A stretch of 64,000 nucleotides of DNA from Neoechinorhynchus agilis. Its lineage: Eukaryota > Animalia > Acanthocephala. The position numbers and the translations under genes are program-made. Where the stretch lies: assembly GCA_051530055.1 (NCBI GenBank), contig CM121342.1, positions 4,215,489 through 4,279,488 of the forward strand, in the 5' to 3' direction. The notes below the pieces were generated by a model. That model worked only from the letters and a program-made list of their open reading frames with translations. It did no database searches and had not been told where the DNA came from. Positions 61,501 through 64,000 of this stretch are shown here, one piece after another; the stretch's first letter is position 1; every line of letters begins with the position of its first letter.

Positions 61501-63780
61501 CGACAGTGTGTAAGCAAATAACAATCATTGTTGTCGATGTAAACGACAATTTCCCCATATTCTCAAATTTATCAGCCAACAAATGCGACTGTACTGCACA
61601 GAATCGGTTAGAATGCAAAATCGAAGCTTACGATGTCGATATTGGACTTAATGGTGATATTATTTATGGAATAGAAGATGGATATAAGTCGATAGAGGTT
61701 GATCCTTCAAATGGAACAATAAAATGTCTGCCTTCAAAATACACAAACAATCAAATCGTCACCTATAACGCAAATATCAGTGCATGCGACCAAGGATTTT
61801 CTCCAAAATGTTCATACACGAGTGTTCAGTTAAAAGTGTTCAAGGAACAGATAATCTGCAATCAACAAGAGACGGTTAGACTAGAGAAGATAAACATCAC
61901 GATTCCGATTTTTACCGTTTGTCTTAAGAGAAACGTACCTTTACATGTTTTAGCCACAAATCCTTCATATATTTCTGATCACATTGAACTTCACAATCGA
62001 TCGATCTATTTGTCAAAATGGTTTTGTTGTGTTCCACAGTTTGAAGTCTATCTTGCAGCTATGAGAAAAAACGCAAATGATACCGAGGAAGCTGTGATAA
62101 AGTTCGTCGTTCATCCTTATGCATTTCAAAAGGCAATAAGATTCAATACCCAAATCGACGTTTATCAGTCCGTGAGTACTTTGCGCAATCGTGACACTCA
62201 ATTTGTTGGTTATGCTGTAAGCTTACCTCCTTTTTTGGAGTGCTCGCTTAGCTTTTCGCAGTTGATTCCACATCCTGATTTTTCTGTTCAACCTTTAACT
62301 GGTATTATAAGGTTTCGATATTCAAAAACATCTCCTAGAAGTATCCAGAGTGGATTAATAGTCGCTGCCCATCCGATTTGTGATGGATTTTAAGGCGTCC
62401 ATTTGTTCGATAATGTGTTTTTGCGCTTCGAATTTACACCATTGTCTTTGATTTCAATCGGAGGGGGGAATTCCAATTTATTGATAGTTGCAACCTTATT
62501 AACGTCCCCGAGACTGGATTAATTTACAATACCTGAAGAGGTCTGCATGCAGACGAAAATTCGTACAAATCAGTCATCGAGGAGGTTAGTAAGGTTGCAA
62601 CTTACTAAAATCAATCTTTTGATCCGGTCTAAAATTATACTTATGACTTCCCACACTTTGTGATCTTTGAATGGTTGCAAATGGACGCTCAACACTTTTC
62701 CATCCGTTAGATCGGTGCTCCACATAAAAGTTCAAAACAATGCTCGACTACTAGAAAAGTCAAATTTGACATTAACGGTACAAAACCGATCTAATGTTGA
62801 AAGTATACTCACAAACGGAAGCGAAGTACTATTTGGGCTTGTTGAGAATTCGATTGGTCATTATGACGCCCTGATTGGCTCCATGAGCACTGATTCGATC
62901 ATTGGAAGGTCACTTGGAAGAGCAGACTCAATGTATCTTCTTCAAAATCCCAGTCGTCCACATCTCTTTGATTGTGAGGACAGTCCAAAAGGCGGAAAAT
63001 GCATTACGCTTCAAGTTATAGATGTTTTTTCGAAGCGCGAACTTTCTCGAAGAGTTGACGATGGAGAAAAATGCAGAAAAAATACAAGAATTAGGATTTT
63101 TAATGACACACATAACCTTTTTCGTCTCAATCGTCAAAACCATTCGATCGATGTTAATTCTGCTCTTAATTTGTCTGCGGTTAATTGGCTCAATGAATGC
63201 CAGATAGAAATGAGTTTAAAGACAAAAAGTTCTGATGGATCTCTAGTTTGTATTAGAGATAGTCGGATGATTTTACTGCTCGTGAAGATCGAATGGAATA
63301 TAGTCCGCCTGCTCATAAATTGTAAGGGAAGGTTTGTACGAAAAGCAATAGAAAATTTAAAGATATCCGACGGTCATTGGCACGATTTACGTTTGCAATA
63401 TTTCCCAAATGAGGTTAAACTCCGCATTGACAAAGTCTTCTATGTATCGTCTTTTTGTTCTGAGACTCACATTAATGATCAGTTGGACGTAAAGAATGTT
63501 CAATTAAGTATAGGAGGATGCGTTATAGAGTAAGTTTTGCATTTATTTGAACATTGTCACTAAATTCAAATTTAGTAAAAGATCAAAAGTGCAAGGAATT
63601 AGTGGTTGCTTAGGCAATGTATCCATCAATGGTGCTCATCTACCACAAAATGGATACGATTTCAAAAACGGTATCGGATGCCTTGAAGGTATAAAAAAAG
63701 TTTTATCTTTTTTTGTGAGAAAAATTCGCTCTACTTTATTTAGAATTATAAGTCTAATAGTAAAATTTTTTAACGAATAA
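52567..63780 (+). CDS. Very large divergent cadherin-superfamily protein with a laminin-G-like region (Fat/Flamingo-like); probably continues past the window
   Basis: Signal-like MVCTMFVQMIMIQLLVLA. Exon 52567-55627 splices in phase to 56650. Cadherin motifs: FYIDPDKG, AFDPDGG..ISYTL, DVNDHPPIF, LDRE, DVNDNFPIF, AYDVDIGLNG. LamG-like: SDGHWH, LSIGG, GISGCLGNVSING. Confidence 0.85.
55670..56556. repeat. Nested direct and inverted repeats in cadherin intron 1
   Basis: 55670-56112 is repeated at 56118-56494 with a ~70-nt deletion. 55996-56066 is inverted at 56485-56556. Confidence 0.92.
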
Positions 63781-63994
63781 TCTTTTTATTGTTTCTTTTT
63801 TTAAAGGACAATTTTAGATTAAATCGTCCCCCGGACGCTGGCCGCAATTCCTCGTTGGATTGCGAGGCTTCCCTGATCCAAAGAATAAGCCTCGCAATCC
63901 AACGAGGAAATGCGGCCAGCGTCCGGGGGACGATTTAATCTAAAATTGTCCTTTAAAAAAAGAAACAATAAAAAGATTATTCGTTTAAAAAAAA
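63766..63994. mobile_element. Fold-back insertion made of two head-to-head CRE 3' ends
   Basis: Arms 63766-63870 and 63887-63994 with a 16-nt spacer. The right arm reads LIQRISLAIQRGNAASVRGTI* + AATAAA + A8; the left arm is its reverse complement, ending in T6. aatagtaa flanks both sides in direct orientation. Confidence 0.9.
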
Positions 63995-64000
63995 TAGTAA

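Follow-up and report, generated by a model that had tools for sequence, protein, structure and literature searches.

Structure of the palindromic insert

How two short 3′ ends of a retrotransposon could come to lie head-to-head within a single insertion is the question raised by a hairpin-shaped insert of 228 bases at the right end of the window (the whole stretch of 64,000 nt analyzed here, from Neoechinorhynchus agilis contig CM121342.1). An inverted-repeat search placed the arms at 63766-63870 and 63887-63991 (105 nt each, 98% complementary, 16 nt between them). Two differences separate them: 63847 and 63910 are mismatched, and the tag that precedes the tail is CGTT in the left arm and CGTTT in the right arm, an indel of 1 nt. 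Each arm carries the end of an open reading frame (QRGNAASVRGTI), followed by a 3′ UTR of approximately 48 nt with AATAAA and then an A-run, and has matches in approximately 90 further 3′ ends, all belonging to a single retrotransposon family that is dispersed in the genome. The T-run at 63766-63771 and the A-run at 63987-63994 form tails that both point outward, and the last two A of the latter double as bases of the target-site duplication (TSD). The first-pass annotation, which had described arms of about 105 bp with one mismatch and one indel, made of the extreme 3′ ends of an element with outward tails and flanked by a direct repeat, was accurate in all of these points. The features are listed in Table 1.

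Table 1. Features of the palindromic insert, its target site, and its surroundings in the window.
Feature	Position	Strand	Basis or remark
Host intron	63691-64000 and beyond	+	Donor GT at 63691; acceptor ~139 nt past the window
TSD, left copy, AATAGTAAA	63756-63764	.	Sequence and chance estimate
Left arm: inverted, 5′-truncated element 3′ end	63766-63870	-	Repeat search and alignment
Lone C, in neither copy	63871	.	Alignment to six other copies
Right arm: direct, 5′-truncated copy	63872-63994	+	Sequence and alignment
Private variant in both arms	63841 (-); mirror position 63916 in the right arm		GCGGCCAG versus GCGGTCAG in all other genomic copies
TSD, right copy, AATAGTAAA	63993-64000, running one base past the window	.	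Sequence beyond the window
Second 5′-truncated family copy, different sequence after the stop codon	20552-20804	-	

The left arm reads T6, the tag (AACG in this orientation), the 3′ UTR, and then the stop codon together with the 12 codons that end the reading frame. Its element sequence is truncated at AAGCCTC, 51 nt upstream of the last base of the stop codon and inside a truncation hotspot of the family. In the right arm, which has its stop codon at 63936-63938 and its AATAAA at 63967-63972, the element begins with CCTGATCC, about 65 nt upstream of the last stop-codon base. The 16-nt centre is not neutral. Positions 63872-63886, which appear as a "spacer" of the palindrome, are the continuation of the right-hand copy, so that this copy comprises about 115 nt of element plus the A-run, and the left one 99 nt of element plus T6. 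The inverted and the direct copy abut one base apart and overlap completely, each starting at its own tail. The lone C between them may be either a non-templated base at a cDNA-to-cDNA junction or a point change. The exact 23-mer that contains the private C was found only in the two palindrome arms when the 46-Mb genome was searched, and the assembly contains neither a source copy with this C nor a long or full-length copy with the CGTT tag.

Library artefacts can produce small palindromes, and the insert was judged from the assembly. A chimeric or hairpin read is nevertheless a scarcely credible source, given the two differences between the arms, the unique and direct flanks, the proper TSD, the location in an intron that is otherwise intact and flanked by two exons of the same gene, and the presence of a second, differently built example (L023) on another chromosome. 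We infer that the assembly is correct here and that the insert originated in a single event.

Target-site duplication and flanks

The direct repeat AATAGTAA (63756-63763 and 63993-64000) extends to 9 bp, AATAGTAAA, with the first base outside the window; two further A had been predicted there by the first-pass annotation, and the second one is absent. On the right side, AATAGTAAA is followed by TTTTCAAATTTC. An alternative reading gives a TSD of 13 bp, AATAGTAAATTTT, the right copy of which ends five bases past the window (L001 positions 1994-2006) and the left copy of which occupies 63756-63769 (AATAGTAAAATTTT), where 63765 is an additional A. Among 200,000 random site pairs drawn from the same window, an exact direct repeat of at least 9 nt within 3 nt of both boundaries occurred 36 times (approximately 1.8e-4). 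Clear TSDs across the element family measure 10-14 bp, and the top-strand nick leaves a T-ended 3′ end, able to pair with A-rich RNA, in five of the six that are readable. At the palindrome, a top-strand end of TTTT, which pairs with poly(A), results from the 13-bp reading. The 9-bp reading, on which both tails are 6 nt long, leaves AAA-3′, which is unable to pair with poly(A) and counts against priming from both ends. The TSD brackets the entire composite insert and is the sole direct repeat at this locus; no separate target duplication flanks the left arm.

These flanks also bear on an origin at the DNA level, either by inverted duplication (fold-back repair or a template switch during replication) or from a mobile foldback or MITE-like element. 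Large perfect inverted duplications do occur in this genome, as at L014, where arms of 1,628 nt that include a family copy together with its flanks are 100% identical. In the palindrome, however, the flanks are direct rather than mirrored, the inverted copy stops exactly at the tail, and the centre does not coincide with the short inverted repeat of the element itself. No mirror image of 63700-63760, the pattern that the first-pass annotation had set against its own reading, was seen in the 1.5 kb read past position 64000, which consists of unique intron followed by an EGF exon. Fold-back is rejected because the flanks are unmirrored, and the palindrome is not a mobile unit because the genome contains no other copy of it; altogether, we regard a DNA-level origin as very unlikely.

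The element family

The element is a poly(A)-tailed, R2-like non-LTR retrotransposon and likely has a restriction-like endonuclease. Its reverse transcriptase domain matches Pfam RVT_1 (1.3e-22), and the best solved-structure matches are R2 proteins (5.8e-06). Non-LTR elements of the restriction-like endonuclease group (R2, CRE, NeSL, R4, and HERO) carry a C-terminal CCHC motif and then a PD...D...K nuclease motif, both downstream of the reverse transcriptase. In the 492-aa translation, a C..C.C...H...C pattern followed by RPDG, WDATCVD, and a lysine-rich stretch can be recognized by eye. Since searches of the C-terminal part against Pfam, PDB sequences, and the ESM Atlas returned no named nuclease family, the endonuclease is called from these by-eye motifs. 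Members of the CRE clade (CRE1, CRE2, SLACS, and CZAR) insert into spliced-leader genes. Such site specificity was not found for the family studied here, which the first-pass annotation had called CRE. Its copies are scattered over many unrelated places in AT-rich DNA, for which the element has a preference, and their TSDs differ.

Genome-wide, 93 cores of the open reading frame end were listed, and 89 copies were used for truncation statistics. Truncation close to the stop codon is common (40/89 copies end within 150 nt of it), and 15 of the 89 end in one 15-nt interval (expected 4; Poisson 2e-5). This hotspot holds the ends of both the left arm of the palindrome and the inverted arm of L023. 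RNA structure was considered as its cause and rejected: the last 234 nt fold mildly more stably than shuffled sequences (z -2.7), and the hotspot is not singled out. The short and similar lengths of the palindrome arms can be accounted for by the frequent truncation of the family near the stop codon or at the hotspot.

With short 5′-truncated copies so frequent and AT-rich DNA preferred, two independent insertions might be envisaged, in which a 5′-truncated copy was joined later by an opposite copy exactly at its 5′ junction. By a rough estimate, the probability that an insertion falls no more than about 1 nt from the 5′ end of an earlier copy is about 3e-6, and such a hit would be needed twice, in the window and at L023. 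The left arm lacks a target duplication of its own, and the two arms have a genome-unique variant in common. We therefore consider two insertions highly improbable.

Other inverted copies

Four inversions of the twin-priming type were found among the approximately 90 3′ ends. One has a gap of 10 nt between its two pieces (L024; 11-bp TSD and 3-nt microhomology), and in the others the pieces overlap by 27 nt (L025), 85 nt (L073), and ~121 nt (L079). These overlaps run counter to the first-pass annotation, which gave a non-overlapping 5′ inversion as the product of L1 twin priming. L073 has a perfect 13-bp TSD, AAATATGTAAATT, and a 3-nt microhomology (ATT) between the top-strand end and the RNA. 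In all four copies, the inverted piece has sequence that is missing from the direct piece and must thus have been copied from RNA rather than from the other arm.

L023, on another chromosome, is a second head-to-head pair but is built differently from the palindrome. Its inverted arm has a complete 3′ UTR of the second type, the tag, and a T7 tail; its direct arm ends 11 nt past the stop codon and extends 84 nt further 5′. It follows that neither arm is a copy of the other and that each was derived from RNA. A 14-nt direct repeat at this locus (871-884 and 1223-1236) was rejected as the TSD, as about one chance match is expected by estimate in an AT-rich stretch of 1.1 kb, and the alignment of the canonical 3′ UTR puts the true ends elsewhere. 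The TSD is possibly a 9-10-nt repeat, TTTAAAAA(A)T, which is located at the true ends and overlaps element sequence.

Wherever direct repeats are readable, the inverted structures of this family lie inside them. Across the inverted copies and L023, the priming site of the top strand is either the poly(A) tail or a position upstream of the stop codon, at a distance of about 91, 85, 52, or 46 nt from it. The inverted structures form a series from a gap through small and large overlaps to total overlap with two tails, and the palindrome stands at its far end.

The genome search for further palindromes that the first-pass annotation had proposed yielded one analogous pair and no second locus of the same build. 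Among the 93 listed cores, L023 is the only other close head-to-head pair. The far pair L014 was rejected as a similar case, since its duplication takes in the flanks and represents a different phenomenon. A genome pattern search for two cores 40-90 nt apart returned only the palindrome locus. For 23 ordinary copies, the 5′ junctions were aligned locally with the 3′ ends, and no short inverted tail fragment scored above background (best L039, 26; control maximum 29).

Probable priming from both ends of the cut

Taken as one insertion event, the palindrome is probably explained by priming of reverse transcription from both 3′-OH ends of a staggered cut, at the 3′ end of the element RNA. Most likely it was a single accident, with both ends of the cut DNA starting to copy from the poly(A) tail. 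The outward tails, the direct repeat around the composite, and the unmirrored flanks support this explanation. The first-pass annotation had proposed two-ended priming, which is strengthened by the four twin-priming copies, the L023 pair, and the T-ended nicks; that the priming was also "symmetric" or "simultaneous" is presumed rather than seen.

From the structure of the insert and the comparison with the family, we infer the following order of events. The bottom strand would be nicked to the left of AATAGTAAA, and the end ...CTATT-3′ would prime on the poly(A) tail, giving the right arm with ~115 nt of element. The top strand would be nicked 9 or, more likely, 13 nt downstream, leaving ...AAATTTT-3′. 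This T-ended overhang could then pair with the poly(A) tail instead of an internal site and prime a second cDNA, the left arm, which would halt at the truncation hotspot of the family. Finally, the 3′ ends of the two cDNAs would be joined with one extra base, and each strand would be filled in on the other. The predicted product is TSD, T-tail, inverted copy, direct copy, A-tail, and TSD. Since the arms share a variant that is unique in the genome, their template would be either a single RNA molecule or a pair of RNAs from the same source copy. This account draws on one fossil locus and one analogue (L023).

Several features of the palindrome count against two-ended priming and would suit the snap-back of a single cDNA. 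In such a snap-back, the right arm would lose its RNA, fold back, and extend to its own T-tail, after which its oligo(dA) 3′ end would pair with the T-ended top-strand overhang and start an ordinary second strand, so that direct TSDs would result as well. The left arm is contained entirely in the right arm and could be copied from it. The difference of 16 nt between the arms, which is also the length of the spacer, has a chance of 6.5% with independent lengths (two random family copies differ by no more than 16 nt that often) and mildly favours a model that ties the arm lengths together. The equal 6-nt tails of the 9-bp TSD reading point the same way, as do the private C and the rare CGTT tag common to both arms, for which the assembly offers no source. 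The shared variants are, however, equally explained by a common RNA source. Alignment and direct reading revealed no self-complementarity at the inner arm ends or the centre that could prime a fold-back, and a snap-back origin is excluded for each of the five further inverted structures of the family. A snap-back also requires removal of the RNA and a stop exactly within the tail. We consider it unlikely, albeit less so than the other alternatives to two-ended priming.

Comparison with known systems

Classical twin priming of L1 is said to have been set out by Ostertag and Kazazian in 2001. The family studied here resembles it in having two opposite pieces of one element within one TSD, microhomology between the top strand and the RNA, and small gaps or overlaps at the internal junction. 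L024, L025, L073, and L079 fit this pattern directly, and L1 twin-priming inversions with internal duplication have also been reported (bioRxiv 10.1101/2024.08.27.596794). In classical twin priming, the second primer anneals within the RNA, which results in a single tail and an inverted piece derived from a more 5′ region. The palindrome has neither a more 5′ inverted piece nor a single poly(A) tail; its total overlap and two tails are explained by a second primer on the tail.

Placement of both primers on the poly(A) tail was postulated for L1 as "dual priming," with two separate RNA molecules as templates, or as a variant of twin priming (Meyer, Srikanta, Conlin and Batzer, 2010, Mob DNA 1:7; PMC2837659). 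In both dual priming and the palindrome, one TSD pair encloses a poly(T) on the 5′ side and a poly(A) on the 3′ side, and a top-strand 3′ overhang would prime on the poly(A) tail after early nicking of the second strand. At the 39 primate L1 loci studied, no element sequence was found beside the poly(T), and dual priming was regarded as speculative by the authors themselves (PMC2837659). In contrast, at the palindrome the T6 is followed by the inverted 3′ UTR and open reading frame end, amounting to 99 nt of element, and the A-run closes the other side, which is the full predicted structure. One RNA copied twice and two sibling RNAs account equally well for the private C and the tag that both arms carry. 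A further difference from L1 is that the element is R2-like and likely has a restriction-like endonuclease, not an APE-type one, and resides in an invertebrate host.

L1 insertions of two oppositely oriented reverse-transcribed sequences derived from different RNAs have been described as well (Mendez-Dorantes et al., 2024 preprint; PMC11702581). Those cases are clones with engineered L1 over-expression and involve two different transcripts, whereas the palindrome is a natural germline insertion and owes its shape to both pieces being of the same element lineage. In light of these two precedents, the insertion class, which the first-pass annotation did not recognize as described, is not a new one. 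For the junction, an analogy may be drawn with the end-to-end template jumping of site-specific R2 in vitro (Bibillo and Eickbush, 2004, as cited in PMC2718515). According to that citing account, the cDNA end is joined to the 3′ end of another nucleic acid without homology and with addition of a non-templated base, to which the single odd C of the palindrome might correspond.

A possible regular side pathway and its implications

More tentatively, and with somewhat greater doubt than confidence, we suggest that two-ended priming is a regular side pathway of elements with a restriction-like endonuclease. Second-strand cleavage would then precede completion of the first strand, and the top-strand 3′ end would act as a full primer of target-primed reverse transcription, placed by T:A pairing. 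The T-rich end would find A-rich RNA either at the internal AAAGAAUAA tract or at the tail, and two-ended priming would account for ~6 of ~90 insertions. The truncation hotspot would follow as well, with the annealed top strand acting as an obstacle to the first reverse transcriptase. If this is true, the palindrome would show for the first time a natural and fully resolved trace of the dual priming postulated for L1.

To our knowledge, nearly all known cases of twin priming involve the L1 of mammals, which is an APE-type element. In the present genome, an invertebrate R2-like element exhibits the whole twin-priming series, from a gap to complete overlap with two tails. The palindrome would represent a route that was proposed for human L1 and has rarely been seen so clearly. 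If two-ended priming is correct, target-primed reverse transcription outside L1 allows an early second nick, and the top-strand end is able to prime on RNA at a site chosen by T:A microhomology. The order TSD, T-run, inverted 3′ end, direct 3′ end, A-run, and TSD provides a signature that can be searched for in other genomes.

The host intron

The first-pass annotation had placed the palindrome in a cadherin intron, and this placement holds. The intron lies between a laminin-G exon and an EGF plus transmembrane exon of a cadherin-like gene, for which Pfam returned matches to Cadherin (4.6e-07, weak), Laminin_G_2 (2.9e-06), and EGF (5.7e-05). The 105-bp hairpin is probably a by-product of the insertion; it could in principle feed dsRNA pathways or be unstable at the DNA level. 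The insert makes up approximately half of this intron of ~450 nt.

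Structure of the Palindrome and Its Flanks

The window corresponds to G000:C2:4215489-4279488. The assembly analyzed here has 46 Mb in 102 contigs, and the copies examined are on the three largest. A repeat search at the right edge of the window recovered two 105-nt arms that are 98% complementary and separated by 16 nt, in agreement with the near-perfect palindrome (one mismatch and one 1-nt indel) described in the first-pass annotation. One difference is a substitution, at 63847 in the left arm and 63910 in the right; the other is a single T in the tag. Read outward, the left arm consists of T6, AACG, and the reverse complement of the 3' UTR, the stop codon, and twelve codons. 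Read in sense, the right arm contains ...QRGNAASVRGTI, the stop codon (63936-63938), a UTR with AATAAA (63967-63972), CGTTT, and an A-run (63987-63994). In an alignment with six other copies of the same retrotransposon, the centre bases 63872-63886 extend the right copy (CCTGATCCAAAGAAT...), so that the starts of the right and left copies lie ~65 nt and 51 nt, respectively, upstream of the end of the stop codon. The single junction base, C 63871, fits neither copy. At both positions where the arms differ, the right arm matches the state usual in the family, and the left arm is derived. As RNA, the region is predicted to form one hairpin (-176.5 kcal/mol, z -31.7), and this predicted fold implies no function.

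Past the A-run, the adjoining DNA continues with TAGTAAATTTTCAAATTTC..., then unique intron sequence and an EGF-encoding exon, and shows no mirroring of the left flank. The direct repeat noticed earlier is present as AATAGTAAA at 63756-63764 and 63993-64001, one base beyond the window. Among 200,000 random site pairs in the window, 36 had an exact repeat of at least 9 nt within 3 nt of both boundaries. The target-site duplication (TSD) can alternatively be read as 13 bp, with AATAGTAAATTTT on the right and AATAGTAAAATTTT with one extra A on the left; four of the six left-hand T are then target sequence.

The Retrotransposon Family

A genome search matched the arms to many loci, and a 22-mer at the ORF end has 93 exact or near-exact occurrences. 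Longer copies encode a reverse transcriptase (RT; Pfam RVT_1, 1.3e-22) whose nearest relatives of solved structure are R2 proteins. By eye, a 492-aa C-terminal translation contains, in this order, a CCHC-like motif, RPDG, WDATCVD, and a lysine-rich stretch. We read this part as a putative restriction-like endonuclease; Pfam, PDB sequences, and the ESM Atlas gave no confirming profile for it. The copies are scattered over unrelated AT-rich sites, have at least two 3' UTR types (each ending in AATAAA, a short heritable tag, and A5-A9), and have TSDs of 10-14 bp where readable. Based on the RT relatives, A-tails, and dispersed sites, the family is, as judged from sequence, R2-like, poly(A)-dependent, and not site-specific. 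The tag is 3-12 nt in each copy (e.g., L003-L010, L018-L020, and L026-L045), and some tags are shared among subsets of the copies (AGC, five; TATT, four; CGTT(T), three). The pattern is that of a heritable lineage marker, possibly set by the cleavage/polyadenylation sites of the source transcripts.

Both arms have a C (63916 and 63841) where every other copy has T, and the 23-mer with this private C has no occurrence in the genome outside the two arms. The CGTT tag is otherwise found only in L027, a 115-nt dead copy with the usual T. These shared variants indicate that the arms derive from one RNA, from sibling RNAs of a source now missing from the assembly, from copying of one arm from the other, or from subsequent gene conversion between them, and they do not separate the priming models.

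Strong 5' truncation is evident, with 40 of 89 copies ending within 150 nt of the stop codon. A hotspot between -60 and -46, at the 15-nt A-rich tract CAAAGAATAAGCC, accounts for 15 of the 89 ends, compared with 4 expected if ends were even over the last 150 nt (Poisson 2e-5); these figures come from BLAST alignment ends, possibly off by a few bases, and the 5' ends of 31 longer copies are approximate only. The hotspot holds the left arm end (-51) and the inverted arm end of L023, and the internal priming sites of L073 and L025 fall in its A-rich tract. One idea is that a T-ended top-strand overhang might anneal there, blocking the first RT or priming a second one.

Other Inverted Insertions

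We screened ~90 3' ends of the family for inverted structures, with positions counted from the end of the stop codon, and five comparators are listed in the table.

Features of the window palindrome, related family copies, and nearby sequences (inverted start is the 3'-most base of that piece)
Feature	Location	Strand	Direct start	Inverted start	Gap or overlap	TSD or remark
Left inverted arm	63766-63870	-				repeat search of window
Right inverted arm	63887-63991	+				repeat search of window
Truncation hotspot	63878-63892 (right arm), mirror in left arm
L024			-80	-91	10-nt gap	11 bp, TTTGTTTAGTT
L025			-72	-46	27-nt overlap	AT-rich direct repeat
L073	L073:596-1076 (G000:C3:7086662-7087142)		-136	-52	85-nt overlap	perfect 13 bp, AAATATGTAAATT
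L079			-206	~-85	~121-nt overlap	long inverted copy
L023			~-138 (end 11 nt past stop)	on poly(A) tail (arm end -54)
L003						12 bp
L028						10-14 bp
L029, extra bases	L029:374-400 (G000:C3:6020869-6020895)					14 bp; e.g. TTTTTTCTTTAATT
L030, extra bases	G000:C2:3658716-3659636	-
L042, extra bases	L042:368-376
Three long ORFs	window:52342-60530	+				1,096, 794, and 362 aa
L014 inverted repeat	L014:976-5414 (G000:C2:4084475-4088913)					~127 kb upstream of window
L012 tandem repeat and ORF	L012:1588-2856, L012:3938-4897 (G000:C1:8910587-8911855, 8912937-8913896)					upstream of one retrotransposon copy

In L024, the GTT of the TSD is common to the inverted piece. L073 has 84-nt inverted arms and a 197-nt spacer, and the last ATT of its TSD forms a 3-nt microhomology with the inverted piece. 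L073 is also a clean twin-priming copy, and past its stop codon the sequence is of a third 3' UTR type in which no A-tail is obvious. In L023, 67-nt perfect arms flank an 80-nt spacer, and a candidate TTTAAAAA(A)T repeat overlaps with the element; all of the second-type UTR is present in the inverted arm, along with its tag and a T7 tail, and the direct arm terminates within the UTR at TTTTAAAA, which matches the target. In all five comparators each arm holds sequence absent from the other, which means that RNA, rather than the opposite arm, was the template for both. The top-strand priming sites run from -91, -85, -52, and -46 to the tail, and the window palindrome would be the last step of this series.

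Origin of the Palindrome

In five of the six TSDs that can be read, the 3' end left by the top-strand nick terminates in T (...AAATT, ...AATTT, ...GAATT, ...TAGTT, and, on the 13-bp reading, ...ATTTT in the window), and for four of the six the same holds for the bottom-strand end. The window target begins with AA and ends with TTTT, so both 3' ends could pair with poly(A). In L024 and L073, the position of the second primer follows the same microhomology logic. Among otherwise ordinary 5'-truncated copies, several (L029, L030, and L042) carry 7-14 additional bases, starting with T, between the element's 5' end and the left TSD. A candidate source of these bases is very short top-strand cDNA made from the A-rich tail; scored against controls, this origin did not reach significance.

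We favor, with some reservation, two-ended priming as the explanation of the palindrome. The top strand would be nicked early, its 3' end would be extended on an RNA template, and the two cDNA ends would be joined. Such a process would need only steps already required by the five comparators, and it accounts for the T-ended overhang and the single odd junction base. Snap-back of one cDNA would also give direct TSDs and agrees with the short spacer and the shared variants, but the inner ends of the arms have no complementarity past the arms themselves that could prime it and the family offers no clear example, which makes it rather improbable. A length difference of 16 nt or less is seen in 6.5% of random pairs of family copies, such that the near-equal arms are a mild argument for a length-coupling model. 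Two independent insertions, a DNA-level inversion or mobile foldback unit, and an assembly artefact are unlikely, since the composite as a whole lies between the two copies of the sole direct repeat, the flanks are in direct rather than mirrored orientation, no other copy of the palindrome is present in the genome, the arms differ at two positions, and a second, differently built example is present on another chromosome. All of this evidence comes from one assembly of a single genome.

Comparison with Known Systems

The suggestion that this is an undescribed insertion class did not hold, because similar products have been reported or proposed for L1 (PMC2837659; PMC11702581; 10.1101/2024.08.27.596794). 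Meyer et al. (2010; PMC2837659) found 39 primate L1 loci with 5' poly(T) and proposed two routes, a form of twin priming in which a single long poly(A) receives both primers and "dual priming" with two RNAs; these routes were indistinguishable to the authors, who hoped for validation of the mechanism from later work. A 2024 preprint (PMC11702581) described engineered-L1 insertions with two reverse-transcribed sequences in opposite orientation, explained by opposite DNA ends that are each RT-extended and then ligated. Another preprint (10.1101/2024.08.27.596794) reported internal duplications in twin-primed insertions, as well as translocations bridged by L1 with two poly(A) tails. Template jumping by R2 RT is cited in a passage of PMC2718515. 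The novelty lies in a natural two-tailed insertion that is fully resolved, has element sequence in both arms, and comes from an R2-like element, accompanied by intermediates of the two-tailed structure in the same genome.

Host Gene and Nearby Sequences

The insert is in a ~450-nt intron; the upstream exon ends a laminin-G domain, and the downstream exon encodes EGF repeats and a transmembrane helix. The cadherin label given to this intron in the first-pass annotation is plausible given a weak cadherin match in upstream ORFs. Three further long ORFs located upstream of the cadherin, LamG, and EGF exons had no Pfam match at E of 0.001 or better and probably represent strongly diverged extracellular repeats belonging to that same large gene.

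On the same contig, L014 is a 1,628-nt inverted repeat whose 100% identical arms include a 5'-truncated copy of the palindrome's retrotransposon together with ~800 nt of flanking sequence. Either this segment was duplicated in inverted orientation very recently, or the assembly is in error here. At L012, we found a ~382-bp tandem repeat and an ORF with an AAA-ATPase match (PF00004, 1.1e-12), neither of which is part of the element. This tandem repeat is related to the ~330-bp tandem repeats in the 1,183-nt spacer of L014.
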